Shown in pieces: positions 23,701 through 50,197 of a stretch of DNA of 64,000 bases; the first letter of the stretch is position 1; each line of letters begins with the position of its first letter. The position numbers and the translations under genes were made by a program. The notes under the pieces are model-generated. The model worked only from the letters and a program-made list of their open reading frames with translations, did no database searches and was not told the origin of the DNA. The DNA lies in contig OZ287752.1 in the NCBI GenBank assembly GCA_965649765.1, positions 19,344,001 to 19,408,000 on the forward strand. Reading direction: 5' to 3'. This DNA is from Bispira polyomma (lineage: Eukaryota).

Positions 23701-26700
23701 TGTCTTCTGGTACTGAACTGTCGGATATCTCTAAAGTTACATCTGTGGCTGGAACTTAGGGCAACATATTAGTAGTATGTACAAAATCTTAAAAAGGCAA
23801 CTGATATACAAGCACCCTATTCGCACATTTTAGTTGACAATATATATGAATAGCTAAAAACGTGTAATATCTAACAAAACTCCCCATGTGGTTTTGAAAC
23901 ACAAGTACTAACTATTCAAATTAAATACTAATTATAATATATAGATTCCACTACAATGATACTTTTATATATCCTTTACATACCATATATATCCAGTGTT
24001 TTGACTGTAGATGTTCTCACTGTCTCTACACTTGTTCCTTCCATCCATGTGACCTCACACTGTACCTGTTGACCTTGGTGTTCACTGTAGGTAAATGTTG
24101 CAGTCTGTCTATACTTTACAGTATACGTCCCATTCACTGACCCTGTAGTCTGTGTCTTTGTACCAGATGTCAGTGTAGACTCCCCTACCTTTACACCAAA
24201 CTCTATCACCTCCTGACCTCTGTACACTGAGTTCACCTCACACTCTATGGCCTGTTTTACTCCTTCTATTACAACATCTAGACCTTCTAGTGTCACAGAA
24301 GATGGGCGTACTGCAATAAAATTTAAACAAAAGTATAAACTTCAACTGATCAGACGAAACTGTTATGCATGAGCAATATTTCCAGTTATAAATGTAGTAC
24401 TTAATTAAAAAGTCACCCTCATGCTAATAACTCAAGAAGAACACCCTACTGACTGTTGGTTACATTGTCAGCCAATGTCTAAAGATTATGGTATTATTAA
24501 GTATTATTAAATTGTAAATTTGAATTTGGATATTTAACGGCCCCTTTAAATGGTAAATATTCGCCTAGCTAAACATCTACATATCTGAAAGCTTACTATG
24601 ATATGGCACAAAACTAAAGTATGTGAAGTACATATTTTACAAAAGTAGCCCATTCTCAATGATAAATAAGTCACAGGATAATTCTTTCATATTCAAATAT
24701 CTATTAGAGACTTCCTAGACATGTAAACCTCTGTAATCTTGTCATATTGCAATTTACCTGAACCCTAATTTTCATAAGTTTGTGACTTTCACTCTAATTA
24801 CTCATTTAAGTACAGATTAAGCACCACACAAACACCTCTACGACTTTGTTATATTTTAGCATACAAACAGGGATACCATAGTCTTTCTCCTCAGGAATGA
24901 CAAACAAATATACAAACAAAAGTGTAATCATTATGAAACAAGTCCAGTTACATGCACTGAAATAATGTATTTACTCATGTGTGAGTAATTTTGTTTTTGT
25001 TTTTTATTGATCATATATAATGAAATCTGACCAGTGCATTACATTTTCTGAACCTGATTTAGAACTAATAGTCAAGTAAATACAGCCAAATATATGACAA
25101 GTAACTATTGTGTAGTTATAAAAATAACCTTAAAACGAATCAATATGGAACAAACTTTAATGACATAATGACAAAATATAAAATAGTCTTACACATCAGT
25201 AGCCTTTATATGTAGCCACAAAAGACAAATATAATACAGTTCAAATAGTACCAGCATATAAGATAGTCTTACACACCAGTAGCCATTATATCTAGCCACA
25301 AAAGACAAAGTTGACTTCATAATATTAGGACTAGCCATAAAACCATTTAAAAGTTACTTCACATAAACTGGTTACCAACATTGAATAAATTTGCAAATAC
25401 CATTGGCCAACTAATCATGGCCCCAACATTGACCATTGTGCATAAACTTGTCCCCTACTGACTACTTTAGTTTCATGCTCATGTACATTGTCTCCTAACC
25501 GAGCAAAAACGACATAATGAGAGCTTAATCTCGTTAAAGCTGAGGCAAAAGGGAGGTGGTGGGAAAAATAAAATATATGTGTGTGTTGTTCCTTCAATAT
25601 CGAAATTCAATATTGAAGCTTGAAAAGGCGGGAACTAAATAAGGTAGCTAAAATTCTAATTGGCTGTTGGTTGGATAGACAGAAGAAAAATTATACTGGT
25701 AGCTTAGCCCAATTAAAAAGTAGGGTTAAACAGAACTAATTCTTTGTGGACATAGGTAGCATTTCCCTAAACGTGTCCTGCTTACCACAGTCCCCAAGTG
25801 TTAAATGAAAGGTTGAAAGGTAAATGTCCAAAGGTCAAGTTGAAGATATTAAGTTGATAGTATAGGTGAGATATAAAGCCGGTAATAAAAAGATTCAGTT
25901 TGAGGCTTTATTTTACATGTTAGTTTCCTGTATATATACATTAATGGTTAGGTAATATATAGAATGCTTAAATTTTTAAAATTATGTAAAATTTTAGAGC
26001 CCCAAAGCCAAATTACAGGGACGAAGAGATAGCTGAGGCAAAAGTGAGGGGGACCACAGAAGCAGCCATTGAGGTTTTTTGAAGATAAGCCCAGACCGAT
26101 GAAAACCTCCAAAGAGCATGGGCCATGATGTTTTGGAGTGATACATTATGATTAAATCAAACATTGAACCCGACCTCCTGAATGTATGAAAACCATCCTA
26201 TTTGAGTAAGCACTTTCTCCAGTGCAGCCCTAACATGTGAATCCACCCCTGTGTAATAGGGGGGCCACCTACTGCAAATAATGGTGCTGTAGGGGTAATG
26301 GACTAGCTAACAGCAGTCTTTTGAGTGCTGTGACTGGGCAAATAATCTTATTTTCCAGGGTGAACTGATATCTAAATTATGTATGTATCAGTCCTGTTCT
26401 GTAAATGTTTGGCCCATTTCAGTATTAGGTGAATCCCAGGATGGCCAAATACCACATACTGTCTCAAAACTTGTCTACAAGGTCAAAAGCAGCTCTAGAA
26501 TGAGGTGATAGATTTTATAGTCTCAAAAAATCAAAGAAGGCCACCAGAAATGCAGAAATTTTAATGTAAACGCTACATTATCAAATTTTTCTTTGTCAAC
26601 GTTATCATTAAGTGAAGCCCATAAGGGTGTGATGAATTCAGAATAACACATCGTTTTGTAGTATCCTTAGGTCTAGGTAACAATGGAGAACAATTATAAA

Positions 26701-29700
26701 AACAAATTAATATCCTTACTTGGACCTAGCATCGCTCCAAGCGACATTTCTTTTTGTAGATATTCACCCACTGCTTGAGGGTGCTGTAATGCTGAAAAAT
26801 GATTTTTGACCTAGTCATTTCTAACCTCATTTGACTCTTTCAATGACAAGGGAAATTCAAATTGCACGTATTGAATTAGTAGTTCATCAGGGTAGTTCCA
26901 AGCGACATTCCTTTTTGTAGATATTCACCCACTGCTTGAGGGTGCTTTAATTTTAAGACCAGAACTTTTTTCCAGAACAATTTTTCCAGGCTTTAATTTT
27001 CAGACCAGAACTTATTGGTATCCTGACCTATCCGCAATTTTAAATTATTTTGAAATAGAATTCATTTTAATGGGTTGCCTAACTGGCCTCTGAAACTGAA
27101 AGTTTGTTGGTGAAAGTGCTATAAATCCAATTTCCTTACTGTGGTCATCGATATCCCTAGCTCGCTTGTTAACGGGGTTGCTAGTATTCTCAGTGAAAAA
27201 CATTTTAGTAAAGTTTTTGGAAGAAGAAAGGTTTGTGACTAAACTATGGTGTGTAAGAATGTTACCTTGTTTAAAGTCAGTGTCCTTGATCATGACAATA
27301 TTATTGACTGCATTTATTTTCCTAACATTTTGAGACAATTGAATTTTGTTATCACAATTTTCACATATGAGTACCAATATTTATTTTCCATTGTTGACAG
27401 AAAAAAACCTGAATGAGCCCATTATTGCTTCTGGCAAAAACTACAGGTAATGCCCGCATCCCTGTGTGCTGTATATATTGCCAATTTGTCACATTAACTA
27501 TCATGGTTCTGTCTTGATTATTGTTCCCCATACTGGTAATCATAGTTTTATTTTTTGTCACAGACACCATGACAACATCTTGTTTGACATAATGAACCTT
27601 TTATTCTTTCAGTATCTCAGGTTTCTGCTTAACAGAGTTCCTATCGTCTTGGACTGTGTCGACATGCATTAGACTCTTATTGGTTTCTAAAACATTCCTA
27701 CATATAATATCATTATATATGTTAGCATTATGTTTTATACAGTTTAATACATTTTCCTTATCTATTCCTTCTTTTTGAAATTCGTTATCGTTTTTAACAC
27801 ACATTACTACAGACATTACTACAGACATTACTACAGACATTACAATTTATAAATTTGTTATCAATAATGCACTCATATATGTTATCATTAACGTTAGGTA
27901 GTTTCTGCTTTCCCTTATGATCAACTAATTTTTAATGTTCTCTTTTAATTTCCCATTATTTAACTCACTGTTCCCCAAGTTCTGTGGTTCTGCAAGTCGA
28001 GTACCTTCCTATTTAGTAGCTGGCTGACTGTCAGCTTACTTATTAGCATTTGCTCTGTAACATTTAAATTCAGGATGTCCCTGCTCTTTCCCCAACACTT
28101 CAGAACAGTACCAACAGTCATGCTTGTAGCTCCCATGATATGATTTATACAAACACTTGCCATTGTTGAATAGCTTGCACTTCACTTTGGCATTGTTTGT
28201 GCTGTGACCGTACCTTGGCTAAGATGGTTGGCCATCACCAGTTGTGAGGCGTTGAATTGATTGATGGCCCATTGCGTGATCTCCTGCCAGGAAAGCCTAC
28301 CTTCTTCTATTTCCTGCATGTTCAGGGCCTATGCAGTACGTACTACGGGCCATGGAAGTGATGCTGCATCGCATAGTATGTATATGAGCTGATGTAGCAT
28401 ATTACTCCATTATCTGGAGGGCATTCAAAACCTGCCCTGCTACCCACTGAGGAAATGCTAGGTCATCAAACAAACTTTCTAGCTAACACAGCCCTTATTC
28501 GGCCATCTGAACCGAGCATCAATTGTGGTCACATCTGTGTTATTAAACCTTCCCGATTTTGTACGAGCACTCAGCTTACATTGAAGTAGGGTTTGGTTGG
28601 CAAGAATTTCATATTCAGTCAACTGATGTGACACTGCCAGTTGAATATTGGGTAGTGTTCTCAAGATGTCCACGCTTGGGATGATTCTGTCTGGGGCATA
28701 TTCACGCGGGATGACCCCTGGCTAGTGTTGCATTGGTAGAATTGTATGCCCCGTGTGGATGTGCTGATGCAGCAAGTGAGAGTGAACTGGGTGTCACTAC
28801 AGGGGTGGAACTAGTCATTGAACGAGCTTTGACCCTGTCTATTCTCATCTCCAGTCTTTTCAATATGGCCAGAACCTCGCTTGAGTTATCACTGGGGGCA
28901 GAACTGTGACTGTGAATGTGACCATTGGCCGTGAGAGGTGTACGATGAACAGGCACGTTCGTGGACAGAAGTTGGCTGTGTATGTTGTCTAGGCCAGAGT
29001 CTGAGTCCAACAAGGAGAACATAGCCGCCTCGCTGAATTGGCTTACAGGGTTTGTTATAGTAGAAGCTGATACCTGTGAACTCAAGACTTTTTCTTGTGC
29101 ACTCGTTTCTTTGCTGTTGGCTTCTTTGTTTTGAAAACGGCCCAATTCTGAGTTTTCTTGATGCCTCCCATGATCCCATGAGAACTGAATTCTCCCAAAC
29201 TGATTAGTACCATTCGTGACCAATGTATTACACACAGACTCGTGTTAAAATAAAAACACTTTGTAAAGAAGTTTAATATAAAAAAGGAAAAATAAAAAAT
29301 AATATATATGTGTGTGTTGTTTCTTCAATGTCGAAATTCAATATGGAAGCTTGAAAAAGCGGGAACTTAAGAAGGTAGCTAAAATTCTAATTGGCTGTTG
29401 GTTGGATAGATAGATGAAAAATTATACTGGTAGCTTAGCCTAATTAAAAATTAGGGTTAAACAGAACTAATTCTTTGTGGACTGACATAGCAGTTCCCTA
29501 AAGGTGTCTTGCTTACCAAAGGCTTTATAACTGGATAGTTCAAGCAATAAACTTCAAATTTTCAACGCATTGGACGATTTGTGAAATTCTTTTTGGCATT
29601 AGATCAGGGGAGAAAAGTTACAACACATATTAAATTGATGAATATTGTTGTTACATATGGAAAGTAGTACATAAATAACTCAAGAACAAATAATCGCAGA

Positions 29701-32700
29701 TTAATTTTTCATGAAATTATAAGTTATACTGTGATCAATCTCCTTGCAATGTTTGCACTATTTCTAATTGGTGTACACCAATGACATTGAATATGCAGCC
29801 CCATGGTCAAATGTGTTAAAAGTAGGCATGTAGTTCTTACACTGTGACAAAATATAGGCAGACCCATATATTTAATTTTTCCAGTTTGTGTTCTAACTGG
29901 CATTGAGATTCAAGGTAAAATTTGAACAAAATTAAGCTACATCTTCAAATACAACCACACAAACTTCACAAAAAAGTTTAAACTAATTCCAAAAGTAATA
30001 TTTTAAGTTAGAGGAAAAAATGGTTAAGATATGGTGGACAACCCCAAGAGTATTTTCTGATTTTCATCCGTGGATAATATAATAACTAAATGTACTTTAG
30101 TTGTACTAATTACAAAAACGTTGATTTAAATTTCTAAACTGTGAGAGACACTAAATGACCTGTGTAAAGTGGGCAGTTGGATTAGGAGTAACCTTTCCAT
30201 GGCTGTGTTAAAATATTGTGGGGATATTCTCAGTCTACTGTGGAATGGTGATTTATATTACTTGCTGAGTGGGGTGGGGGTGGGGTGGGGGGTGTGGGAA
30301 GTTTCACTATTATAAATTGTACAATACCTTAGAGATGTGGAACTATTGTAAACATATTGATAACTTTATGACTATTTCTCACAGTGCTTGTAGTAAACTA
30401 GTTTTGTTCTTTATGTCATTCGGGTGAAACGATAAACATCCTTATAATGTGTAGAAATGGTACATAAATATCTGCAAGGTACCTTCTTTCAGTTTACTTT
30501 TCGATTCATTTTGTATGACTATATACTATCATTAATATTTCTGGGTTCAATAATACCCTGCCCCTTTCTACTTCATCAGTGCCATGAAAATATAATCCCC
30601 AGAACTAAGTCACTCTACTGATATGTACATAATAGTGAAAACTACAAAATAACAAAAAGCTAAACAGATACTGGGGAAATAATTATATCATGTATTCACT
30701 GAATATGCACATGAAAGAGGGATGGCTCGACTGTGTGGTATAAATTCATATTATCTTTAGTTCATTGTGACCTTTTACTGTACATGTGTTACAACTTACA
30801 CGTTATGTGTTTTAATATATGGCATAATAATACTGCAATACATTTGCTATGAATACAAGTACAAACATGTTAATAAATATTAGCACAACAACTAACCTAA
30901 AATCTCCCCCAGTTGTTTTTCTTTCTCAGATCCAAAGGGATTCTCCACAGTGACTACATTACACCTGAACTCCTGCTCCTCATCCTGTTGTTTGTTGACT
31001 CCAATCACCAACTGGTGAGATGTTGTTGTCAGTGTGGAGTCTTCTACATCTATCCTGGACTTGTACTCACTGTCAGGTATGTTATCCTCTGTGTTAGGAG
31101 ACACTAGTATGATTTGTTCATTACTCCCCTTTAGTGTCCACCACACCAGTGAGGTCAGAGTTCCTGTAAACACACACTCCAGTGTCAGCTGTTCTCCATC
31201 TAGTATATAGTAACCACTGTCAGCTGAGTAGGATGTGGTGTAGGACACTTGGGTCACTTCTGTGTGAGCCACCTCCAACATGACTAATGGTGAAAATAGT
31301 TCATAATGTTGTTTTAATATATAATAAAGCACTAATCAATCGATGGTTAAATAAATTCTTGGTTACTAAAATATGAAAGTAATGTGGTTAATCTCCAAAG
31401 GTAATTTTTTATAATGCAGTACTACCTACATATATTAGGTACCAGAATTTAAACCACAATAACATAGAAAAACAATCCTTACTCTGGAGTCGGGTAAAAT
31501 AGATGTAACTTTAATTACAGTTTGTGAATGAGCAGCTACATTAATTAATATACTATTAAATGGGTCAGATTTGTGTTGACTTTGTTTAAGTTTGGCTATA
31601 TTCAGTATCATACGATAATTAGTAGTATAGCAGTGTTTGTATAATGCTAATCACAAAACAACAACCAATTTTTACAATTGTACATTTTCGATTTTTTTCA
31701 TGAATATGTTATGCTGTCATCAGAAACAAGTCAGTGGCACTGATGCCAACATTTTATTACTAGAAAATATTAGGTTGGGTGGAAAATATTAGATGTGTGA
31801 TACATTGTAAGTTTTTTTGATTGAACATCAATAACTATTCTGTCATTGTCCTTACAAAAATCAATTTCCGTGTTTTTTTTCTATTTTTAAGGAAACATTA
31901 CACCTGAAAAATTTTTAATTCATGCAATCAATTTCATATGTTTTTTGTTTTTTATAATTTTTTAAATAAATGTTGTATAGGTGATTTATGTGACTGATTC
32001 CCCACACAAAGAACAAAGAAGGATTCAAGTTAAAGTAAGTGCTCCATGTAAATCAATTATATAAAATTAAGTCTGTGAACACATACCTAGGCATAGCAAT
32101 CCGATATTCCAAAACACACGTGGAGCCATGAGATTTTCTTGTGTGTTGATTTTCTCAGTAAAATACACGTATAATGAAGAAGTATGCTATTTTGTATTTA
32201 ATGTTAACTACTAATAATATGAATACACAAAGAACTATCTTATGAACTTCCTCGTTGAACACATATTTGTCAATATAACATAAGATACTCCATATTAGGA
32301 TATGGCAAATACTCGAAGAGAAAATATTACAATATACAGGGAAGCGAACACTGTCTTTTCTCTAGGGACACACATCATGGGCGATATTTACTAAGGACTA
32401 AAAGACAAACACACACATATATTTCTTCATTATTGCATATAATCAATACATGCCACCCTTTCTTTTAATATATATTTCGACATGTACCTCAAGTATATAT
32501 AGTCCGATTTTAGATAATGTCATCAAGATACAACAAGAATTTACTATACAACCAACATAATTATATATTTTGGGCTTTGATTAATTCACAAATTGATCTT
32601 TTTGACTACAACTTAGTTTTGTGTACAAGTTAGGGTACACGATTTGGCTTTGGGAGAACAAGTATATGTACTTTGTTTTCAAAGAGAGAACACTTGCATA

Positions 32701-35700
32701 TGTCTTAACATACCCAACTTACACCCTGACAATTATACCTTGATTTTTTTGTTCAATTATCTTGTGCGCACATCTTATAATCTGGTGAGCACAAGATTAT
32801 AAAACAAAATCAATATTTAGATGTCCCAACAGACACTCTTGTGTAATTTAAATAAGTGTATAACACTCCCATATACCACAAGTGGCTGGCTGGGTCTAGC
32901 TATTGATTTATTTACGTTCTATGTAATGTGATAATACCCGGAGAGAGTATAATAAATATACATTTGATGTAAGTGTGTCTATTTTGTGGGTAAACTGTAT
33001 TAATTGACTCATTTTACTTGTTCTTGGTTACAAACTTAATCAAATGAAATGCTTATTTTATTCATAAGGAATATTTACTGTTGTGTACGAAGTCCTCTGT
33101 ATAATTTGTAAGGGTTCAATTAAACATACATAACATCACCAATTGTGGATACCTACATTACGAAATGGTACTATTTATTATGTTCCCTATTATGGTGGCC
33201 TGTAGTAACACATTTCCCAAATTTTACAAACATTTATGCAAGTTAAACTCAATATATATCAATAGATTAATGAGCCACACATGTATCCAGCTAAGTTTGT
33301 AGCACAACTTATTATTTGGTAAAGATATGCACTCGTGCAGGGCTATTTTTGTCAAAATTTCTGTTTGAGTTTCACTTATTGACGTTACTATATTATCTTT
33401 GCCTTAAATGTCTATTATATATGAACATTATTAGCTTGCTACTTTACTGTCAAGATATAAAACAAGGTACCTAATGGTTAAATAAGCGGTACTGGTTAAG
33501 GTAGCACTTGAAACTAGCATAGTTAGTGCAGTTAATTACATTTGAGGTTTACATATAGACTTCCCCATAATAATTGCCGTACAAACAAACTAAAGAAGAA
33601 CTACTCGATAAAAAAATTGATTTCAAGTTAAATAATGTTTGAACTACAGTTTATTAATATATTATGACCAGTGAATTATTTTTATTGTTTTTTAACTTGA
33701 ATAAGTATGAATGTGTACAGAGTTTATTTAGGTCTGCTTATTTTGAACATATAATTATAGCATGCTAAAAATTGAGGTTACAGTAATGTTAATACAACAA
33801 CTAAGATGTTATATTTTGCACGACTAATTCATTATCTGTTCAATTCAAGTTTTACAGGGAAGAGAAAATTACCTTTCTAAAATTTAACACAAATACATGT
33901 TAATTATTATAAGTTATTGCAAAACAAGGGAAAGCCCTGACAAAAACAAACTGTCAAGGTTAATTTTAGGTGAATACATACAAGGAAAATTGCCTTGGCA
34001 TCCATTATATGATTATACTTACACCTTTCCACCTTAATATTATATCAAAGTCTTCCCCTAGATCTTAATACTCTAGTTTAGCTGCATCACCAAGTGCAAC
34101 GCTTATCACATTCATTGTTACTGCAACATATTACATTTGGGATCCAAATGTATCAGTGACATAATGTCCGTGTACATGAGAGTGTGGTTGATGTAAGCAA
34201 GAGTTAAGTAAGTTCAGTGCTGACCCTAAACTATCTTATTAAAACTATTTTGGTTTTGTGACCCTAATTATTGATTGGATGGCAGCTGTCTTACATACTC
34301 TAACAATTCCCGCCAAAAGCCATAGGACCTACTTTAAATTTAGAATTTGGAAGAACATAACACCATTTTAAATACTTTCAAATTTTCTTCTTTATTTAAT
34401 TCTTGACAATGCGTCTGCTATATTATTCTTTTTACACTTAATCTGTAGTTGTATGTCATATGTTTCTGATAACAGCCATATGTTTCTAAGGCATAATGCC
34501 AGGACATCATCCCTAATCTTATTAGAGCTAACCACCAGAACATGTTGTCACAAAAAAAACTTATTTTATGGTGAGACTACTGCCTTCCCTATAACTATCA
34601 TGATGTTTATCATCTCAATATGTACAATAGATATTTCTCTGTTATACACATTGTAGAGGGGTGTGGAATAGATTTGATTGTGAGGCATGCATCTATATAT
34701 ACTGTGTTGGTAATGTCAATTTTTGGCGAAATATAATTGATTCCATTGTAATTTGTGAGACATTTTATAAACCAGCCTATGTCTGCTTTCGTTTCTTTGG
34801 TAATTTTGAATCGTTTTGCTTGTGCGTTACCTCGCAACACCATAAGCAGCCTGTTGATGAAAGCCCTGGCTGGCTTAACGCATTAATGGATATACAATAA
34901 TTTCCCTAAATTAGATTGAAATTTTCCTCTAGAAATCCATTGTTTCTCATAGACCTTCTTACATAGTTGATAAGTTTCTTCATTTTTTTCCTAAGTGATA
35001 CCTAGACAGGTGACTTTAGTATCAGGAAGTTAGAGTTTATCTACATTGGTGGGGAGCCCTAAAGAATGTACTAGTTGCTGTAGCTCATCAAATGCTTTAT
35101 TTGTTGTGTCTTTACCAGATACGCAAACATTGTGGACAATGTAGTAGAACAGCTTATAGAGTTTTTTTGGACATTACATAAGCAATTATATCCGAGCAAC
35201 GCTGGAATACTGCCAAGCCGTGGATCCAGCCGAACGTGACCGCAGGATCCACATACTTTCCGTCTCCGAAACAAATGCCCTATTTGATGGCATCAACAGG
35301 GTAGACCCGTAAATTTCTGAATGCTCTGGCTTCGTCCAGTTTTATATTTTTTGCTACAATATCATCTATTGTTGGAAATTTAAGTACAAAATTGGTTCCA
35401 TCAAATTCTTGCTTGTTAACATTGGAAAGCACCTTGTGGGTATGACAAATTCAGAATTACACGACGTTTGTTTTTGTCTTTTGGCCGAGTTAGAAGGAAG
35501 GAGCAGTGGTACAGGTCACTCTCTACAGTTTTAATTGGACCCAACATGTCCCTATTGGCACTTTCTTTGTCCAGATTTTTTGCAGGATTGACAGAGGACC
35601 AGCTGGCTGCAGTTCACATAAATGCTGATTAAGATCATATTTCTGATCAAAGAAACCCGATATGTTTGGTTTTTGAATTTGGATATGTAAAACTAGGACT

Positions 35701-38700
35701 GGTTGCTCCCAGTGGGTAAATTTGTGTGAACAATTTGTCACCTGGATAATGGCGTCAGTTACAAATGTGCCCGCAAGTTTGTCTAGCCAGTTTTTGTGAA
35801 CCGTTTAATGACTGAGAAATCTTGTATCAATGTGAATGGGTACATTATTGCTACCAACTGCCTGCAATCTATTGGTGTACATTACCACATTATTATTGTC
35901 AAATTTAAATTCTTTTCCACTTATCTGATTATTATCCAAACTATTTATTTTGGGTACACTGACTTTCGCCTTACATATTTCACTGTTATCATAGCAGACT
36001 TCAGCTGGTGTACTACAGCTTAGCCTTGTTTGTAACTCATTTTCACTGTCAGTCACCTGACTGTTATCCACTTATAAATTTACTGATCTTTTTATCTTGA
36101 AACTTCGTAATTTGTTCAGTGTGACTGTCACATGACTCAGTATAACCACTGGGCTTGACTTGGTACATTTATTATTTCACATCTATTAGATTTCAAAGTT
36201 TTAATGTAATATACCCCGTTGTTACTGCCCCCCATAGGCTTTCCGTATGTTCGTTTATCTAGTGATTGGTAAAGATCCTAACTGTTGTTATTTGGTTTAA
36301 CCTTATGTTGCTTAGTTAAATTCGCCTGGTAGCACTTGAATTCTGGGTGTGTCACATCATTGTGCAGTACAGTGGCACAGTGCCAGCAAATGTGCCTTTA
36401 TTGCCCATAATCAGCTTTGAGGTTATATTTGAGTTATATAGTTTGCATATTGTCCTGGAATAGTTAGACGACTGGTTGCTGTGCAAATTATACGAGCCAT
36501 AAGAGTGAGATGACTGCGCCATGGCCATCTTGGATGCGTTGAGGCGGTTTAATGCTCATTGGGTGTTATCACCCCACTGAAGGTGATCCTCTTTAATCTC
36601 ATGCATGTTGTGTAACCATGAGGTCTGGAGTACCTCCCACGGAAGTGATGCAGCATCACGTACTGATAAAATCACCTGCTGGCACATTTCTTTAGAAGTG
36701 GCCGGATCTGTTTCCTGCATGGCGTTGGCTAGCTGGCCAGCCACCCACTTGGGTAAGAAGAGCTAATCAAACGTGGGACGTTTCCTGGATGTACCGCCCA
36801 CCCACCCTTAATTTGTCCATCTTAACTTAGGATCCGTTGTAGCCACTTCTGTACTATTAAATCTGCCAGACTTCTGGCGAGGAAGCAGCTTACCTTGGGT
36901 AAGTGTCTGGTGGGCTTAAGACTTATATTCAGCAAGCCGTTTGTTGACTAATGCTTGGCTAGTGACTTGCACTGTAGGCACGATGACTTCAGTCGTGTAG
37001 TCAGCGTGGATGGCAGGGAGCGTCGGCTGTAGTGGTGGATTCGATGGGAGCAATGGATTTGCTGTGATCGGGTTGATCTGTGAAGGAGCAGCCGGCATGG
37101 TAGTACTTTGGCCTAGCCGTGTTTCCATCTGGTCTAGTCGGTTTGTGATTCGTTTGTTGGATTTAGTTAACTTGTCAGGCATCGCAAGCATGGAATACAT
37201 GGCTTGACCGTCAGTACTCGGCCCAACATGGACGTTGTAGAAGTGTTAGACGCTTTGTAAACGAGGATCTACTGCCGAAACTACATGGCCATTGGTATTA
37301 TCAACGGGAATCTGAGTTCGGTGTAATAGAGGGGACACAAATTGGGCAGATAGAACCTGATTAAAAGGGACCTGTAACTCCGAGATGATACTGTCACTGT
37401 TCTCTCTGTTCACTACCTTCCAATGAGAAGTTTTGGTTTCGTTAGTACTTTTGCTGGTCTCTTTCTTTTTGTTCTCCGAGTGTGTCTTTTTTTGTCCAAC
37501 CCATGTTCAAATTTTTGTTTGCAACTTACTCAAAATTAATAAACAAATAAAGTAAAACTAAAATACTAAAATCATAAAACAATTGTATAATGTTCATGAA
37601 AATATAAACGTGCATTCTACAATATAATCTTCCCAGGTGTTGTTTCTTCAAGACTTAAAAAGGTGGGAAAACTTATTGTCCCTTAACACAAAGAGAATGG
37701 CTATATGTGTGGCTGGATGGACAGAGTGATTTTTTAGTCAACTCGCTTCTAGGTGTTAAGGTGGCTATATAATAATTTGTGGTATATGGGGGAACTGAAG
37801 TAGCAGACCCCTTCATGGTCATACCAGGAGAGAGTATCATAAACATACATTTGATCTAAGTGTGTCTATTTTGTGGGTAAACTATATCAATTGACGTGTT
37901 TTACTTGGTCTTGGTCACACACTTTATCAAATGAAATGCTTATTTTATTGCTAAGGAATATATAATATTATGGAGGCCTAAAATTTGTTTTTAGTTACAC
38001 CTTTTACAAGTTTTATAAAAATTTAGTTAAACTGAAAAATATCAATTGATTAAAGAACTACACAACTTCTAAACATTGTTCAAATGTTAAAATGTAATAT
38101 TTGGTAAACATTAAAGCTACTCCTCACAGTCAAGATGATTTACATGAGAACAATGTAAAAATACTACAGACAGACGAGTCATGGTCAATAAATTGAACCC
38201 AATAACATAATCCGAAACTGCAATGAATTAACAAATATTGTTCCTAGAAAACCAATGCTGGAATTCAGGAAATTGCCAAATGTGAAAGATATAGGTCTTC
38301 CTTAATCAGATTCCCATCAAACCTGATTTGGAAAGACAATCATTGATCACAATTAGGGAAAGGTAAATATCCTACAGTCCCAGATTGATAAGACACTCCG
38401 AAAATTTCTAGATATTCAAGAAATTTGTCAAGGCTGTCTCTTCTGTGAGACTAACTGTAACTGAAATTACCATCTCAAAATCTTTTTCACGAATAATGTT
38501 TTAAGATAATGATTTTCTAAATATCTGATTTCAAATCTATCCATGAAAGGTCAGCATAATTGGGAGCTAGGACACTGATCATAGCTTTGATCCTTAAGGT
38601 AAGGGCGATTATTTGGGGTACACAGTGTGCAAAAGATAACACAATTGGCAAAAAAAATATATTTGTGAAAAGTTAGTTGCGTCAGTTGCTTGTTACAACA

Positions 38701-41700
38701 CCTAAAACTACACCTACATAACCAACAAACCATTGACAACTGATGTTGCTATACTGTGCTGACAGCACCTGATGGGGCTGATTACCTATTTGATTGTATT
38801 CGTATTTTATTGTATTTGTATTCGTATTCAGATTTATACTATATATCTACCTTCGTTTGGTAGCTTTCCTGACTGCAACAGTCATTTACTGTCATTACCC
38901 TAACTAAAGAGAGAGGCTTGACAATAACCATTTATCAACATCCCCAAGGATACACCACTTGGACGTTAAAAATGTATAATAATAATAATTTATACAACTA
39001 GATTACATAAAGTATAAGAAGTTACATAAAATAGTTACATTTAAACAATGTCAGCTAACAGTGCATTAACTGTGTGCACTCTATTATATTAAAAGAAGTA
39101 CTATTCTCTGACAGAACTTGTAACAACCAATATAGAACTTCTTATATGAGCCCTTTATGACATACTACGGGAGGGTGTGAATATGCACCCATATACACCA
39201 TTTCAAATTTAAATACATGAATTTCACATAACATAGCTGTCTGTCCTGACTCAGATACTGACAGGCTGTCTACTTAACTCAAAGAATGCACAACGATCCA
39301 TCTAAAACACAATTTTGAGGCTTTATTTTTTGAGGCTTTGTTAATTACAAATATTTGGTGTTTATAAAAAGACTTCCATATAAAGATTGCTGTATAAACA
39401 TATTAAAAAATAACTAAACAGGTAAAAAAAATTCAATTCAAGTTAATTAATGTTTAAACTCGAGTTTATTAATATATTATAAACAGTGAATTGTTTTCAA
39501 AACAATGAATTGTTTTACCTTCTTTTTTTTTACTTATAATAATTATAACATGCTATAAATTAAGGGTATGGTAATGTTAATGCAACAAGAAATATGTCAC
39601 ATTTTGTACAACCTAGTAATTATCTGTTCACTTTGAGTTTTACAGGGAAGGAAAGGGACCTTTCTAAAATTTTGGTCATATATATACATTTTAATTGTTA
39701 TTAGTTAGTGCAAACAATGTAATATCCTGACAAAAAAAAAACTGTCCAGGTTAATTTTGAGTAAATACACACAGGGAAATTTGCATCTATTATCTTTAAC
39801 ATTTACATCTTCCCACCTTAATATTATGCCAAGGTCTTTTCCCCAGATATTGTTACCTGTATCACCAAGGGTAGCGCTTATCATATTCCTTATTACTGCC
39901 ACAGTTCACATCTGGGATCCAAATATATCAGTCACATAATGTCCATGTACATTGTTAATTGATAAAATCAGTAGTTTGTTCAGTTAATCAGGATATAATA
40001 AATGGTGCTGGTCATTCTCCCTATAGGAATTTCCATTGTCAGTATTTCAAAGACACAAACTACATATTACTCTTTTTAGCTGAGCCAATAACCAACCTTA
40101 TTCTAGTATTTTTACCGTTATTGTGTCCTACCTAAGTTTGAAATATTGAGGACTCTTTATTACACGATTACTGTTAACCAGTGGCTAGATGACTACACAT
40201 CGTACAAAAATTAAGAGCTATAACAAGTTAAAACTGGATTTCACTTCAAATCTTGGGTTTATAACTTTATGGGTCTGGCAAATATTGACCCTGATGTCAC
40301 AATATGATGATCTGCCAATACCACAAATTATGGGTGGTCAACTCCACAACAGGTACTAGTGTGTGATGAGCAGGTTATGTATGTCATTTTGGATGTGTCA
40401 TCCCTCCACTGGACAATGATGAGAGTTGCATGTGTGACAATTACAGGTATAGGTGGAAGGAACCTTTTCAGTGAGCATGGTATTGCTCTGACACATGCTT
40501 AGCTTGGACGGCAGGGTTCAGTGTTCTAACATGACTATGATAATTTTCATGATACATTTTAAACACCGAAACAGAGTTTGTTGTTATGTTTGTGCTCAAG
40601 ATAAAAACATTGCTTGTAGAATTTATTGGATTGCACCCATTGGTACACAAACTAACCACATGAATCTAATCACAATGGCCTGTATGATAGGACCAATGGT
40701 CATGCGGCGGCCTGTTGCATCACATAGGGTCTACTAATCAATTATACAGGTGGTATTGCAAAGATTGTCAATTATGCTGAATATATAGCACTGCTTATAC
40801 ATAAGATCGCAGTATTGTCAGTGTAAAGTAAGTTGTGGCTGTGAGTACTACCCTTGTCAAAATATCCCCCACAAGTGAACTGAATAACACTGAGAGGTAA
40901 TAGTGTTTACTGTATACTGTAACTACATTCAATAACACAAGCTTGAAACTGACAAGTGGCCTAGCTTAAAATGGCTAAAGATACAAAAACTACTATTTAA
41001 ATGACAAAAATTGTTTTCCCACTATGGTCATGATTGCACCGATTTTATGAGTAAGGTCATTGACAGGCTTATTGAAGAGTGTGAGTGGGAGAATACCATA
41101 TTCCTTGATATTGAATCAGTTTGGCTAATGAGGAAATAATCTGTTATAATATCATGTGATAATAAGGATGTACTTTGTGGTACAACCAAAATTCTGCTAT
41201 CCAGCATAAGTCCGCAACTAGCCAGTACATTGACAAGGAAAAACAATGTGGGGCAATGCGGGGTTAACAAAACTGAAACATAACACAATGTTTTTATATA
41301 GTGCCTTACAACCAAATGCTGTTCAAAGCGCTTCATAATGAACTGAAGAAATTTTATTCAGCAAAGTAGTCTTTAAAAAAATATGTTTTTAGTTTTGATT
41401 TAAAAATTGTTAGGCCCAAGTTTAAATGTAAACAGTGAACTATTTCACTGTTCACCCGACCTAAAGATAACTTAAAACATCGCATTATTCTTAATCTCTC
41501 TCAAGGCAGTTTAAAAGGGTGGGTTTTACACTCAAATTTCCCACTCCTCGTCCATCATTTTATTAAATGTTATTGATCTTTCGTTTAAGGTCTTCGCTAA
41601 TTCTTGGAAAAGCATGAATGTGTATATCTTTTTCTTTTTTTTGAACATGTATATCTTATATATATATCCCAAAACCTACTGTTGCACATATTTTATTATA

Positions 41701-44406
41701 TCCCTGAACACACATGGAGTGTACGAAAGAAGAACATCACAAAAAAATGTGTTAATTAATAGGTCAAAGGTTCAATCATATTTTAAAATGAAACAAAATA
41801 AGAAATGAAAATAATAAACCAGATGACACATCCTACGAAACAACCACTCCTAACTCCCGAAAGTTAAGCCCAAATTCTAAACGGAAATGGTACAAAATGC
41901 TGTCTAGATGATCAATGTCTTCGGCATAGTACCATCTCAATATCATAATATATGGTGAATAATAGAAAAATAAAAAAACAGTTTTATGTTTTACAACCAT
42001 TGCTAGGTTTTGTATGTAACACTGACATAAAGTGTAAATTCCCCAAAACTAAAAGAAATACAGATTCCTGAGCAACAGATCAGATTTTGTCTGAAACCTT
42101 ATCAGTTTGAGACCCCATTGAGTTTAAACATGTCCTCCCAATTTAGTGAAAATTGATTATGGAATAAAGATATATGTTGTAAAAGTTTCACTCTGTAATT
42201 GGCTGCAGACAGCTGGAATCACTAAAACGCACACCAGAGACTATACTTGGGCATTTAATAACGGCCTCATGTAAATTACATCGGGGGATTCTCTTGTACT
42301 AACGATACCCTATTGTGCAGAACTTAAGGAAAATTTAATTATATTTTTGGAGTGTCGACTGATTGCCGCCAGACATAGGTTCTGTGATTAACTAATGATG
42401 TCAACTGCTAACTGACAACATAGGGGTCGAAAGGGTTAATCAAAATGTTTACCTTCCTAAATACCCAAGAGGGTCATGTTGTCATGTAAATAATGATACT
42501 TATTTTGAATGTGAAAAGTACTAATAATAAAAAGGAAACAATCCTGCACTTTTCTAATATTAACCATATTCAGTGTGCCTCAAAACGAGTGCTATAAAAA
42601 GCTCTAGTGTTGTACTGTACTGTGAACTGTTCACACTTGCCAAGAGACAAATATTATGTTTTTTTTTTCATTGGCAGCCTTAAATACTGTATAAGTGTAC
42701 ATTTAATGTTAGGTTGATTGTAATACTCTGTTATGTTTGTGTTTGAAGACATTTATAAACTCTCCACTTGACTTTAATTGACCTTAATTATTCCAACTTT
42801 AATAATTTGTTACTTGATGGTAGCCTTTATACACTAAATTTCCTTCTTATTGACCCAATAATAGAAAACTATCCCGCTATCCTGCTGATTCAGTCCAAAT
42901 TATTATTAGTGAAAGGTTCCCACCATAACTGTGTAGACCACATTCTGTTTGTGTGTAATCAATGTGTATGTATGCATCGGCTCATATTATTGTGCTATGG
43001 CCCAGAAACAGATGATTTCACAAAATATATTGTGTACGCACACAAACTGACACAACATTGTTTTAAGTATATTCATTAACAAAAATAGCTAGGCTATTAT
43101 TAAAGCTAGTATCTCAGCTATTGTTTCTTCTATGTCATGTATATTTAACAGCAACAGTAAAAATTTCCCATTCCGGTATAGTAGCCACACTACCCAATAA
43201 GATCTACAACTGTGATAAATATGAAGTCGTTGCCACTTGTGCTTACTGAGAAATCTTCTGGAGAAATTTAAACTCGTTGAAACTCACTTGGTTATGAACT
43301 GCCCACTTGGAAAACTTTTCCCACATCAGTGAAAAAACTAACATTGCAGTGATGATATTATATATAGATTACTCTGATGAAGATACCTTAAAGGGATTTG
43401 AAATTATAATTTTAAATTACAATTGTGATTACTTATGCAAATAACTTTTCAGTGTGTGTTTTCTCCATTGGCAAACATATGAAAAATATACGTTCCTTAA
43501 GGTAGAATAGATACAATCATTAGGATGGTTATAGAACACACTTTTTTAAAATATATCAACAAAACAAACTCACTGTATACTTTGTTGTTTAAATCCAGGT
43601 ATCTATTTCCAGCATCTCCACCCTGGTTTTCCACATTACACCTGTATCTAACAGCGTCAGTAAGGATGTTCACCTCAGGTATAGTCAGTCTGAGTGACGT
43701 GTCTGTGTAAGTCCAAGTCACATCTCTGTCTTCTAAAGGGCCTCCTAACAGTTCAGTACCAGGTAAAACTGCTTTAGAGAAAAGGTACACTTCATTGTCT
43801 GTCTGACTGTTGTACCAACGAACATCATACACGTCAGCTTCACTGAGTCCATATTCACACACTAGAGTAACACTCTCACCATTCAGTACATAATATGTAG
43901 ACCCATCTCTGTAGTCGGATTCATAGTGAGTTGTCACACTGATTTCAGCTGATGTCAATGCATATAGCAGAACAACTGTAAATATTTTCATACAAATGAA
44001 ATATGTTAAATGTATTTAAGATGTATACTAGTATTAATAGATTGTCTGAAGAGTACAGGCTGTATTTATCAGTATTAATCAACTTATACTCCGTTAATAC
44101 ATTTAAGCAAATGGTTATAATAATACATCATAAGTATTCACTAATTATAACTCAGTGTCTGTTTCAAATATCAATATTACATTCAGTGACAACCTAAATT
44201 TACAAGGAAACAATATTTCTAACTTAACCGTCCTTGATGTTCCATCCATGTTTTATCATGTTATATGTTATTAATTAATTTACTTTTTGTAAATTGACGG
44301 ACTATATCATTATATAAATTGATTGTTTACTGTATAATATAGTACAGTGAAAAATATGGAACTTACTGACACATAATGAAAACATAAATGTATTATATCC
44401 TGCCAT
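2514..44406 (-). CDS. Ig-superfamily cell-surface/adhesion protein gene (nephrin/echinoid-like; signal peptide, 7 Ig, FN3, FN3-like), 3'-incomplete in window; two alternative N-terminal cassettes
   Basis: 12 coding exons with canonical GT donors (and AG acceptors for the 10 non-leader exons), all phase 1, joining without stops: about 928 codons via L1-V1 or 924 via L2-V2 to the constant exons. Cys/Trp Ig motifs and an FN3 motif are present. No TM exon was found between 1 and 2513. Confidence 0.9.
3106..3381 (-). CDS. Constant exon 7: fibronectin type III domain (GVPQAPHSLRIDSVTAISITVSWLAGRNGGATQTFTITY...LDPETDYLIEIMATNVFGDS...KTL)
   Basis: Translated by hand (absent from the ORF track); acceptor CTTCAG|GT, donor CTAG|GTAAT, 276 nt; classic FN3 W, GG, LxPxTxY and AxNxxG motifs. 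Confidence 0.92.
3521..4211. mobile_element. MITE / non-autonomous TIR DNA transposon, probable TA target duplication
   Basis: TAAATTGTGGTTCCA (3521-3535) vs TGGAACCACAACTTA (4197-4211), 14/15 inverted match; subterminal IR CCCGATTTTGAG / CTCAAAATCGGG; CpG-richer than the flanks. Confidence 0.7.
4631..10381 (-). mobile_element. YR retrotransposon A (Ngaro-like), complete A1-B1-A2-B2 termini, internally deleted
   Basis: gag 9815-~8700 (CKKCQKKHYPPTGKNC; C-terminal C/H finger); RT remnant (KIDVSRAFRH, catalytic core deleted); RNase H (LDAC...CDN...ASDLLSR); YR C-half (HTFRCSG, HGTWTSDCVWTY). A repeats at 10153-10381 and 5293-5527; B repeats at 5528-6012 and 4631-5118. No TSD, no methyltransferase. 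Confidence 0.92.
10382..10795 (+). repeat. Helentron/pearl-like element 3' part
   Basis: GCCATCTTG-family units, then a (GGC)n-like tract and 3' hairpin GTATCCA..TGGATAC (10772-10790), same end as at 16849-16868. Confidence 0.55.
10836..11144 (-). CDS. Constant exon 6: Ig (I-set-like) domain
   Basis: Acceptor TTTCAG|TT, donor CAAG|GTAAG, 309 nt; LNCTVRAYP...DFGLYQVVLNNGVG (second Cys replaced). Confidence 0.88.
11460..11862 (+). repeat. Pearl/Helentron-like element with two ~144-bp tandem units
   Basis: Starts ACAAGG...GCTCAC; near-identical units CATCTTGTTTTTCGGAATGGGCCCAAATAC at ~11640 and ~11785. Confidence 0.6.
13275..13553 (-). CDS. Constant exon 5: Ig domain
   Basis: Acceptor TTTTAG|TT, donor CAGT|GTGAGT, 279 nt; LTCEATGGNP...YSW...AGVYSCVARN. 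Confidence 0.92.
13908..13977. repeat. Minisatellite, 3 x ~23 bp GGGGGGAGTGATAGTATAGAACA
   Basis: Direct reading. Confidence 0.85.
14290..14860. repeat. Degenerate tandem repeat, ~286-bp period
   Basis: GATA(T/C)AACAC.AAATACTAGAAATTGA at ~14420 and ~14706; TGACCC(T/C)(G/A)GTT motif at ~14310, 14497, 14801. Confidence 0.55.
15490..16872 (+). repeat. ~147-bp tandem array (~7 units) inside a Helentron/pearl-like element
   Basis: CCCAAGGTCAAA anchors at ~15759, 15905, 16051, 16198, 16345; the element ends with (CGG)n and hairpin GTATCCAC-CTCG-GTGGATAC. Confidence 0.8.
17395..17610 (-). mobile_element. LINE (L2/CR1-like) ORF2 3' fragment
   Basis: LLVPK...KSFANDAPTLWNSLP.../SFRCSLKTYL, typical L2/CR1-clade C-terminus with a frameshift. 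Confidence 0.7.
19957..20095 (-). mobile_element. Degenerate SINE body fragment related to the SINE at 55833
   Basis: Reverse complement shares GGTTT.CAG.GCA.AACCTTGA.CAAC and a ..ATATGACC...TTAAA 3' end with the 55.8-kb SINE. Confidence 0.45.
20228..20539 (-). CDS. Constant exon 4: Ig C2-set (nephrin/CD80-like) domain
   Basis: Acceptor TTTTAG|TT, donor AAAT|GTAAGT, 312 nt; VICRTDEGNPAPTVRWY...STLTI...YSCVV. Confidence 0.92.
21493..21774 (-). CDS. Constant exon 3: Ig domain
   Basis: Acceptor TTTCAG|TT, donor TTAT|GTGAGT, 282 nt; IECISTSANPEP...NGVIYKCTA. Confidence 0.9.
22060..22135 (-). mobile_element. tRNA-derived SINE head remnant
   Basis: Minus strand reads CTGTGGCCTAGTGGTTAGAGTGTCAGACTT (Pol III A box). 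Confidence 0.45.
23458..23754 (-). CDS. Constant exon 2: Ig domain
   Basis: Acceptor CCCTAAG|TT, donor TGGT|GTGAGT, 297 nt; FTCTTSSNPLP...DNKAEFFCRI. Confidence 0.88.
23984..24310 (-). CDS. Constant exon 1: Ig C1/C2-like domain (first shared exon)
   Basis: Acceptor TTATTGCAG|TA, donor TATG|GTATGT, 327 nt; RPSSVTL...IECEV...NGTYTV...VQCEVTW. Confidence 0.88.
25183..25310. repeat. Short direct duplication, ~80-bp period
   Basis: ATAGTCTTACACA.CAGTAGCC.TTATAT.TAGCCACAAAAGACAAA twice. Confidence 0.75.
25569..29518 (-). mobile_element. YR retrotransposon B (Ngaro-like), heavily deleted
   Basis: A repeats at 29301-29518 and 25569-25787; gag (KSGRFN, CKLFNNGKC finger); RT N-part; jump at ~26560 into the YR C-half (AFLVAFFDFLRL, HTFRRSG, HALWR). 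No B2 seen. Confidence 0.88.
27801..27843. repeat. Microsatellite-like 12-mer ACATTACTACAG x ~3.5 within element B
   Basis: Direct reading. Confidence 0.8.
30897..31283 (-). CDS. Variable exon V2: signal-peptide tail (MLEVAHT) + Ig V-set domain
   Basis: Acceptor CATTAG|TC, donor TTAG|GTTAGT, 387 nt, phase 1-1; YYILDGEQLTLEC...W...YKSRI...EFRCNV. Confidence 0.9.
32087..32129 (-). CDS. Leader exon L2 (MAPRVFWNIGLLCL + G)
   Basis: ATG, 14 codons + 1 nt, donor CTAG|GTATGT; joined to V2 it gives signal peptide MAPRVFWNIGLLCLVMLEVAHT-EVTQ. Confidence 0.8.
32934..34177 (+). repeat. Local duplication copy 1
   Basis: Aligns by eye to 37821-38110 and 39330-39952 (e.g. TAAGTGTGTCTATTTTGTGGGTAAACT; GGGATCCAAAT.TATCAGT.ACATAATGTCC). 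Confidence 0.8.
34180..34380 (+). repeat. Possible orphan terminal (A-type) repeat of another YR-retrotransposon family
   Basis: Shares the ATTGG, TTCCCGCC and GAAGAAC..ACAC motif set of the A repeats of elements B and E; no adjoining ORF. Confidence 0.3.
34390..37823 (-). mobile_element. YR retrotransposon C (same family as E), 3'-truncated after RNase H
   Basis: A1 ~37634-37823 matches E A1 in reverse; gag (LVNKRLAEY, WLHNMHEI); RT pieces (KLDEARAFRNLRV); RNase H (IDACLT, ADALSR); no YR. Confidence 0.88.
37821..39952 (+). repeat. Local duplication copy 2 (with ~1.2-kb unrelated insert ~38120-39330)
   Basis: See copy 1. Confidence 0.75.
41290..41420 (-). mobile_element. L2-like LINE/SINE 3' tail remnant
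   Basis: Minus strand AAGCGCTTTGAAC...AAGGCACTATATAAA resembles the conserved L2 3' stem-loop tail. Confidence 0.4.
43574..43975 (-). CDS. Variable exon V1: signal-peptide tail (VLLYALTSA) + Ig V-set domain
   Basis: Acceptor TTTACAG|TT, donor TACA|GTGAGT, 402 nt, phase 1-1; YYVLNGESVTLVC...VRWY...LRLTI...DAVRYRCNV. Confidence 0.9.
44367..44406 (-). CDS. Leader exon L1 (MAGYNTFMFSLCV + A)
   Basis: ATG, 13 codons + 1 nt, donor GTCA|GTAAGT; joined to V1 it gives signal peptide MAGYNTFMFSLCVIVLLYALTSA-EISV. Confidence 0.8.
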
Positions 44407-46587
44407 GTCATACATTTGGTCACGCAGATAATTATATATATATATAAACACACACAGTCTATATTCCAGATACTTCCTTACTATATCAAGTACCCAAACC
44501 TAAGAATATGTCATACAGGTAAACACGATATGTGTAATGTATTATATTACCGTCGATTTATATTTCTTGTTATATCAATGTCTTTAAACAAATTGTAGAC
44601 TATTATAGAACTATTTTACATGAAAATATTTTGCCTGTAAAATATAGAAATAGATAAAGCTCACCCATTGGAGCTGAATATTTATAAATAAAAATTACTG
44701 TTTATTTAGTTTTCATTATATATAATTGTTATGCAACCATTATATTTTAATCTGGTATAAATTCATAATTGGTTTACAATTCTACTTAATTTAAGTTGGA
44801 ATGATATCACTGTCAGTGTTAAAGAAAGATAAAACTTAAGTAGGAAAAGGGCTTGGCAGTGTAGTATAGATAGGAGTTCCAAATTACAAACAAGTTTGAA
44901 AGCTAACGCTCCCAGCGTTGGCAGCCTCAGTTCTGGGGTACCAGGCTGTTCACTACTATGGGATGGATGGGCGAGTATATAAGCCATCCCCCTTTCAAAT
45001 TCTCCCGCCATTTACCGTTTGTCAGCAGAGCACTAGGAAAATTCAAATACTGTTTGGGTGACAAAGAGAGTGCTTTATGTTTTACACCGTTATATGGATT
45101 TTAGTATTTTAATTCAATATACACTCAAGTCATGCCAGGTAAAAAGACTGTGTTTTGTCCGAAATGTTTGCAAAAACATGAGAGACCGATTGGAAGAAAC
45201 TGTTCGGTTAATATGCCTGATGTCTCGGGTGAGGGAGTGGAGGTTGACGCTGGCTCCCATAAGGACTCGCTGGTTCATCCAAACGAGGTTGTATCTAGCG
45301 CTATACTACAGCAGTTGCACTGACTTAGCCAGGTAGTCGAGAGGATGGATCAGCGAGTCCAGCAGACGGAGGCAGCGTTAGCAGCCAACCTCACCAGTAG
45401 TAAGGCAAGTACCGTTCCTTCTAGCATCACTCCTAGTGTTTCTAAAAAGCTAGTCTCTGCTGACGAAGGTAAAAGCCCACCTACCGGCCCAGATACTGTC
45501 GTTCCGATTGTCAAATTTTTGAGTCAGAACGCTCAGATTCAGTTCCAAGTCAAACAGAGGTTAAAGGAACTCCGGTCTCTTAATGAAAATCCCTCAAGTA
45601 AAATTTAGTCTCAGAGAATTGGGGGAAATGAGGTTATTGTGAAAAAGGCCAATGGCCCCAGAATTATGTGCTGACCGGCAGTTCGAAGACTCGCCCTAGT
45701 TACGACGACTTAACCCTTGTACAATGGGTTTGTGGCTTCACCCGGATCGCTCATGAGGAGAAGTCGACTGAAATTAAGAACGCTATGCTAGATTACATGA
45801 GTGACCTCATGGAGGACGCCCAAGACTTTTCGTGGGAGGCGGCGAAGGCCTGCCACGCGGTAGTCCTAACCAATATGGAAATGGACAAGCTTGGGTGATT
45901 GGATGTCGAGAAGGTTGACTGGATTCGCAGGGCACACGCCCAACGTCATGTAGGTGTGTCAAGATCTATTCATGGGCGAATGGCCATGCTGTTTGCACTG
46001 GCAGTAGTAAAACTAGTCAGAAAAAGTCGACACCTTGCAGGGTATTCCAAGAAGGAACTTGCAAGTTCTCTAGCTCACATAATACAGGGGGGCAAAGAAA
46101 GGCATAGGCATAGTTGTGAAACTTGTGGGGGTAGTCATAAGACCAGTATGTGTAGCAAAAAAGAGGCAAAAAACTGAGGGGTCACTGCTTGGATGCAGTG
46201 GATAAAAAGGTAAAAAAATTTAAGGTTGTAAATAGAACTGTCTATGGCACAGGCTTCAAAGATTTTCATTTGTTTGAAAAAAATGTGTATCAGAAAATGT
46301 GTAAATATATGAAGGTCAAAAGGCCTAATGTTAGTTATAGTGATGCTTTAAAAAGTACTGCTAGTACCAGAAAACCAATGTTTGTATATAATACTGGACA
46401 TACAGAAAGTCTGAGCAATAAGGGTGGGGTTGACAGGTTTAACTCTGGAAAGGTGACACAAAAGGGCAGATTTTGCCAACCATAAAAGGTTGGTAGAGCT
46501 GAAATCAAGAATAATGTTGACACCTCTGCTGCCACATCTATTCAAAGGAGTGAAAAGTTAACACCTGCAATTGGCACCTCCATTCAA

Positions 46588-48720: not shown

Positions 48721-48744
48721 CAGGTGCTAGTTTTTCTTTTCCAG

Positions 48745-49730: not shown

Positions 49731-50197
49731 TTTGGGGCTTGGTGGTCTAACTTAAATATTTAGGCTTAAGATATGTCAAAATAACACTAAATATTATACC
49801 TTTTTTGGGCATAAGGTCCCCCCTTCATTATATTAGTACATATTGTACACAAGTATCTAAAGTTCGACTTAAAACCCTAAGTCAAACTTTAGACTAGCAT
49901 GAATTTAAAGTTTAATCTCTTAAGTTTGCCCTAAAATTAAAATTTCTACCAAACTTAAACTCTTAACCTTAAACTCAAATCCTCTAAGTTTGGACTCAAA
50001 GTCAACTTTGGCAAACTTATACTCTCAAACTCATTGTACCTAAGGTCACCTAAACGTAAGCTTTGTATAAGCTCAAGGCCTTAAACTCACTTGAGTTAAG
50101 GGGACCTTATGCCCACAACAGTATTACGTATTCTACAAAGAAACTGTATATAAAAAATGTTAGTAGTAGAAATCATATATATATATAATAAAAGTAT

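Follow-up and report, generated by a model that had tools for sequence, protein, structure and literature searches.

Two leader and V heads ahead of one constant region are best read as an orphan head left by deletion in a birth-and-death immunoglobulin receptor cluster

Do two leader-plus-V units that precede a single block of constant immunoglobulin (Ig) exons constitute a cassette locus, in which alternative membrane-distal domains are joined to one body, or is one of them the remainder of another gene? This question is raised by the window, i.e., the whole 64-kb stretch of DNA that was analyzed, which corresponds to C5:19344001-19408000 of a 1.04-Gb animal genome and contains no N stretches (C5 in base or Mb coordinates denotes the chromosome, not the Ig exon C5). 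The original prediction regarded the two units as exchangeable cassettes. This cassette-array reading of the window is not supported, and overall the locus is best explained as an orphan head that a deletion produced within a receptor cluster evolving by birth and death.

All exons of the locus lie on the minus strand, and the predicted coordinates and canonical splice sites were all confirmed. The first head consists of the leader exon L1 (44367..44406, 40 nt), which begins with ATG, ends at a phase-1 donor GTAAGT and belongs to the same leader type as that of the paralog L004, and of the V1 exon (43574..43975, 402 nt), which is open, bounded by AG and GT, and encodes an Ig domain of the V1 clade. 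The second head consists of the leader exon L2 (32087..32129, 43 nt, donor GTATGT), the first coding exon of a V2-type gene, with a leader type shared by the paralog L032, and of the V2 exon (30897..31283, 387 nt), encoding an Ig domain of the V2 clade, whose clade partner is a type A C1. The body comprises the Ig exons C1 (type A; 23984..24310, 327 nt), C2 (23458..23754), C3 (21493..21774), C4 (20228..20539, matching Pfam C2-set_2 above the cut-off), C5 (13275..13553, matching Pfam Ig_3 above the cut-off) and C6 (10836..11144), followed by the FN3-type exon F1 (3106..3381), whose homolog in a relative matches Pfam fn3, and a second FN3-like exon, F2 (2514..2774), which was assigned by inspection and without a Pfam match. 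Spliced models were joined for the frame check, and similarity searches were made exon by exon. Both heads, L1-V1 and L2-V2, read stop-free via C1, C2-C6 and F1 to F2, giving 928 and 924 aa, respectively, with the expected junction residues KVY-I-RPSS and EIL-V-RPSS at C1, and L1-V1-V2-C1 is an open frame as well. Pfam searches with V1 gave sub-threshold Ig matches only (Ig_3, E 4e-5; V-set, E 4e-4), as did those with V2, and the Cys-Trp-Cys core that is invariant in a 41-sequence alignment is present in both. Judged by the dozens of paralogous exons with the same phases, this exon set is not a product of chance. No convincing constant-type or additional V exon was detected between V1 and L2 or in 44.4-64 kb with tblastn (30 C1-type and 57 V-type exons) and a C1 HMM, which upholds the predicted absence of a constant-type exon between V1 and L2. 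Two signal-peptide-bearing first units in frame with C1 and no constant exon between them are features of a cassette locus, and splicing of either head to C1 would be physically possible given the same phase and the open frame.

The modeled ectodomain comprises 7 Ig domains and 2 of FN3 type. A convincing transmembrane exon was not found within the window, and the membrane anchor of the V2-type gene presumably lies beyond its left edge. The ectodomain of Echinoid is likewise built from 7 Ig and 2 FN3 domains, and the earlier description of the receptor as nephrin/echinoid-like holds at the level of domain architecture, which is where the likeness to Echinoid and nephrin (SYG-2) lies. Beyond architecture the matches are those of generic Ig domains: C4, a C2-set domain, weakly matched neurofascin, Robo and SYG-2 in a structure-database search, and CD226, TCR and neurotrimin were matched equally weakly by the V profile.

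The family to which this gene belongs is large. We found at least 91 V, at least 128 C1-like and at least 102 FN3 matches in the genome, mostly at C5 10.6-27.5 Mb and on both strands, and several copies are broken, with stops or as fragments. Loci outside the window were mapped via match coordinates and 3.4-kb loci, by which divergent exons may be missed. By these matches it is a tandem family with ~90 V exons on one chromosome; it appears undescribed, and no annelid description of this Ig/FN3 receptor family was found in the literature. Single-domain full-length V matches were traced only in one related assembly. Genes of the family usually start with a short leader exon carrying the ATG, and the signal peptide is then completed by the V exon. 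A signal-peptide tail opens nearly all V exons of the paralogs, and leaders were located for many paralogs with a body of their own, including close matches to L1 and L2. The split leader and V layout is the ordinary start of paralogs with their own constant region and is therefore uninformative on cassette use. Unlike antigen-receptor V segments, to which this layout had been likened, both V exons extend past the end of the domain to a GT donor that matches C1 in phase.

More can be learned from the pairing of V and C1 exons. V1 and V2 are only 24% identical and fall into separate clades with separate C1 partners. Six paralogs with 71-81% identity to V1 each possess a type B C1, and among the matches listed a C1-family exon follows 0.2-4.5 kb downstream in 15/15 other full-length V1-clade exons (three of the matches being partial or split). 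These partners are 35-49% identical to the window C1. In turn, a type A C1, 84-92% identical to that of the window, follows all ten of the ten other V2-clade exons among the matches listed. The trees of V and C1 split alike, with support values of 100/100 for the C1B clade and 97/97 for the C1A clade, which includes the window C1. The same pairing was observed in a relative (ENA ERZ22147071), whose V exons are ~60% identical to their window counterparts (V1 and V2 each): C1B stands after the V1-type exon in 4/4 cases and C1A after a V2-type exon. Among the matches listed, no full-length V1-clade exon other than window V1 lacks a C1 of its own, and the layout of L1-V1, L2-V2 and a shared C1 is not repeated in any of the 15 paralogs or the four V1-type loci of the relative, which were compared by V-type exons and not as the orthologous locus.

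Where the missing C1B of V1 might have gone is indicated by the DNA between the two heads. A search with 43600-32500 returned two long matches that meet at 41184/41183. The segment 41183..43025 (minus strand) represents what is left of a V-to-C1B intron; it shares 89% identity with C5:19025484-19027369 and ends ~2.1 kb short of the position of C1B in that paralog. The segment 32500..41184 (minus strand) is the intergenic DNA upstream of the V2-type gene and is 92% identical to C5:18960135-18968750. The two matches overlap by 2 bases (41183..41184, no strand), marking a deletion or unequal-exchange junction, at which a search for repeats or hairpins gave chance-level short matches only. In the paralogous block the matched stretches stand 56.7 kb apart, and this interval, absent in the window, contains the C1B (19023050), C2 (19014184), C3, C4, C5 and FN3 (19002108) exons of the V1-type gene plus remnants of another copy. 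At 17.29 and 17.47 Mb, too, a complete V1-type gene is succeeded by one of the V2 type. A tandem cluster with broken copies and a sharp junction of non-adjacent parts of a paralogous block are features of a truncated paralog. Together, the V1-clade exons with their own C1 elsewhere and the sharp junction argue that L1-V1 is very probably the stump of a deleted upstream gene, where we infer the direction of the change, a loss in this block. An insertion in the paralog instead of a deletion here was rejected because the V1-type heads elsewhere all have C1B, also in another species. Clade pairing and junction now favor an orphan duplicate, an outcome that the original prediction had itself considered, over a cassette array; and V1 is no sister duplicate of V2, given their low identity, the separate C1 of the V1 clade and the deletion junction behind V1. 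A match of 39065-39216 to introns downstream of C1B loci was considered as a remnant of the lost body and set aside as a probable short repeat, since it lies within the 92% identical upstream block.

The junction could also have been produced by the assembly. Logan contigs of all three DNA runs (one study) stop at 41184 with no bridging contig among the records listed, and contig depth, which is not copy number, is lower on the V1 side (13-16 and ~70) than on the other (20-30 and 95-150), a ratio of ~0.6. A misjoin of paralogous blocks or haplotypes at 41184/41183, with V1 keeping its own body in the animal, would account for both observations. However, the two sides overlap by just 2 bases, at which overlap assemblers do not misjoin, a real junction shared with a paralog or a second haplotype would likewise break the graph, and the assembly is near chromosome level (75 contigs), and we regard a misjoin as highly improbable. 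The depth ratio is a weak hint of a recent event in one haplotype, possibly a structural variant. In the three runs, L1 and the 3′ part of V1 match the window exactly; in the V1 region the runs cover introns, show no splice joints and are evidently DNA.

We propose that the window harbors one ordinary family member, L2-V2-C1..C6-FN3-FN3, and ahead of it what would be the 5′ stump of a neighboring V1-type paralog, comprising its promoter region, L1, V1 and part of intron 2. The ~57 kb from the V-to-C1B intron to the intergenic DNA before the V2-type gene would have been lost by deletion or unequal exchange. As a birth-and-death by-product, the stump may now be silent or only leakily spliced while still being able to donate exons in exchange. 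Such exchange is recorded in the head itself, a mosaic in which V1 shares 78-81% identity with the heads at 12.97, 19.50 and 19.73 Mb but just 38% with the paralogous head that the following intron matches, so exons have also been exchanged among paralogs. In the literature, nothing was found that links orphan leader exons with unequal crossing-over.

Silence of the stump is a weaker inference than its origin, and we rate deletion origin and non-use jointly as only somewhat better than even. L1, V1 and the splice sites are intact, which counts against a silent stump, as do runs of V exons without detected constant exons elsewhere in the family. The private changes in V1 (~5.8 synonymous versus 5.2 non-synonymous) look like purifying selection, though this may predate the deletion. 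In simulations of neutral decay the cassette stayed intact in 47% of cases at 1% divergence, 23% at 2% and 5% at 4%, so that either the deletion is recent or the stump is used.

The surroundings upstream of L1 bear both on use of the stump and on the number of heads. The proximal upstream region including L1 (44290..44735, minus strand) is 77% identical to the start of a complete V1-type gene at C5:19.496 Mb, i.e., ~330 bp upstream of L1 are conserved with an intact paralog. A young 5.3-kb retrotransposon (44895..50211, plus strand) with an RT domain (RVT_1, E 2e-12) and a DIRS/Ngaro-like layout lies 489 bp upstream of the L1 ATG, and many copies 90-96% identical to it exist in the genome. Related elements were noticed at ~6000-9800, 27000-29200, 34400-37800, 52300-55800 and 59700-63600; the copy at ~34398-37820 is older and sits inside the 32500-41184 upstream block. 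A short perfect hairpin with palindromic arms lies at 44658-44675, ~250 bp above L1. The nearest family matches farther upstream, among those listed, are C5-like and FN3 exons of the complete gene at C5:19.453-19.496 Mb, so the window locus has two heads only. The suggestion that it might be the proximal end of a larger array does not hold, as 44.4-64 kb contains no V exon and the next family matches are the 3′ exons of another gene. Three features of cassette loci are absent: the units are not tandem duplicates of the gene's own 5′ end, the array is not continued upstream, and the layout is not conserved among the loci compared.

A deletion-born head might nevertheless function as a first cassette if the L1 promoter fires and V1 splices to C1 past L2 and V2, which would place two alternative tips on one body. 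This reading, in our view rather unlikely, would agree with the open L1-V1-C1..F2 frame and intact splice sites, with the 330 bp upstream kept in common with an intact paralog, with the skew of V1 changes toward synonymous ones and with V-V-V runs elsewhere in the family. It would also agree with a V1+C1B head on an A-type body at C5:19.64-19.73 Mb, by which bodies of the other clade may be tolerated. Yet a V1-C1A pair occurs nowhere else among the family loci compared, the V1 donor would have to bypass an acceptor at 12.3 kb, that of V2, in favor of C1 at a distance of 19.3 kb, a retrotransposon sits close above the start codon, and there are no more than two heads. Of the phase-matched acceptors, that of V2 lies nearest, and its pyrimidine tract resembles those of the constant exons; in combination with the L1-V1-V2-C1 frame it could allow tandem use, V1>V2>C1 from L1. 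Such transcripts would encode a receptor of 8 Ig domains, two of them V domains, and the normal form would start at L2. In that case the protein would retain, internally, the hydrophobic tail with which V2 completes its signal peptide, the 9 kb before L2 are intergenic with 17 AATAAA hexamers against 12.6 expected, and the doubts about the L1 promoter apply here too; we consider tandem use improbable. Least probable of all appears a short stand-alone gene, in which read-through of the V1 donor to an intronic poly(A) site would give a single Ig domain with a short hydrophobic tail. The V1 frame does continue for ~25 codons, many of them hydrophobic, and AATAAA occurs at 41697, 41564 and 41358, but this tail is not conserved in V1-clade paralogs, the hexamers are at chance level (3 found, 3.0 expected), and AT-rich introns translate as hydrophobic residues.

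Loci with several heads or a hybrid structure occur elsewhere in the family. At C5:11.965, 11.986 and 11.992 Mb three V exons precede one block of C1-like exons plus FN3, and similar units continue at C5 12.01-12.08 Mb, making three in all, the second with stops (L047, L057). Signal tails and candidate leaders accompany the V exons at C5:11.965 and 11.986 Mb, and among the matches listed none to C1, C2, C3, C5 or FN3 falls between these two. This region may be regarded as a better candidate than the window for a true leader+V cassette array, and the multi-V locus at C5:11.96-12.07 Mb is the stronger lead, though no more than a lead, as short terminal exons or exons in the gaps between the loci read may have been missed. 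In the relative (ENA ERZ22147071), five V exons (one broken) lie within ~51 kb on ctg30716l, of which the 41 kb read contain no constant exon, and on another contig two leader+V units are separated by 3 kb. At the loci L093:6925-10336, L094:2017-16099 and L095:9959-13086 of this assembly, two to three V exons follow one another, several of them preceded by a leader, and the 20 kb of each locus contain no constant exon; one contig carries both L094 and L095, and a V exon with C1 and C2 stands on it at ~304 kb (L098). Orders of the V-V(-V)-C kind were also seen in the match coordinates at C5:21.655/21.649, 21.976/21.963 and 20.79/20.786/20.748 Mb, where tandem V domains or undetected exons are possible. 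At C5:19.64-19.73 Mb (L003, L079), the V1+C1B head lies 33 kb upstream of A-type C2, C3, C4, C5 and F1 exons, with no V2, C1A or FN3 between head and body among the matches listed, and this gene is a probable independent hybrid. Its V exon differs from that at 19.496 Mb at ~5 nucleotide positions, a near-identity that suggests recent conversion or duplication.

Among known systems, the structurally closest, with no homology claimed, are the contracted KIR haplotypes, in which deletion or recombination sets the promoter and 5′ exons of one gene before the 3′ exons of another and some of the hybrids are transcribed (PMC2816608). Here, too, a tandem Ig-receptor cluster would have been reshaped by deletion, and the gene at C5:19.64-19.73 Mb resembles this kind of hybrid. 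In the window, however, the downstream gene retains its own leader and V so that two heads remain, and the junction is a 2-base overlap of unrelated sequences, not an exchange between homologous introns. In chelicerate sDscam-alpha, a two-exon, one-Ig 5′ unit precedes shared exons, and one sDscam gene has just two cassettes; these arose by 5′ segmental duplication, are closer to each other than to those of other species, and have demonstrated promoters and splicing (PMC4835542). The window has the same kind of two-exon, one-Ig unit upstream of shared exons, whereas its V1 and V2 are as divergent as described above and each is closer to its counterpart in another species, its origin would be deletion, and use is only putative. 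In clustered protocadherins and UGT1, many paralogous first exons with individual promoters are arrayed before common constant exons (PMC3325998, PMC4835542); the window shares alternative 5′ variable units ahead of common constant exons but has two heads from different subfamilies and no upstream array. It would work like sDscam or the protocadherins only if V1 were spliced to C1. The Hydractinia Alr complex contains dozens of genes and pseudogenes with signal peptide, V-set, Ig and FN3 parts, with partial duplicates directly upstream of Alr2, one of which later proved to be a real gene, Alr30 (PMC9546547), so silence of an orphan head is not to be assumed. This is likewise an invertebrate receptor cluster with partial duplicates, which together with the KIR hybrids come structurally closest to the window locus, and the likeness is one of layout, in another phylum and with another number of domains.

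As best explained, the locus is an ordinary turnover product in an immune-type receptor cluster. Its value lies in a breakpoint resolved to 2 bases that yields an in-frame second head and therefore offers a concrete way for a shared-constant cassette locus to start; should V1 be spliced to C1, variable/constant architectures could be studied at the point of their birth. More speculatively, and with low confidence, the family might make variable-head/shared-body loci by deleting the bodies of tandem paralogs, in which case the window would be a very young instance with L1-V1 in use, and the V-V-V runs at C5:11.96-12.07 Mb and on ctg30716l would be older and expanded ones. If true, this would be a further independent origin of a protocadherin- or sDscam-like architecture, via deletion and not via the 5′ duplication of sDscam.

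Rearrangements of other kinds were seen in the family as well. At C5:17.250-17.264 and 17.377-17.379 Mb (L037, L041, L042, L030, L040), partial tandem duplicates of a V2-type exon lie between V and C1, one of which has a stop and is split by ~13 kb. At C5:21.736, 21.884 and 17.606 Mb and at C9:19.179 Mb (L052, L055, L053, L046), the exon after V is of C3 type, and matches to C1 or C2 are absent between the two; the C3-type exons of this subfamily are 80-82% identical to the window C3, a case of shuffling of body domains. The relative has a compact V1-type gene without C2 and C3 (L096:9931-13896), consisting of V, C1B, a frameshifted C4, C5, C6 and FN3, so the number of domains varies within the family.
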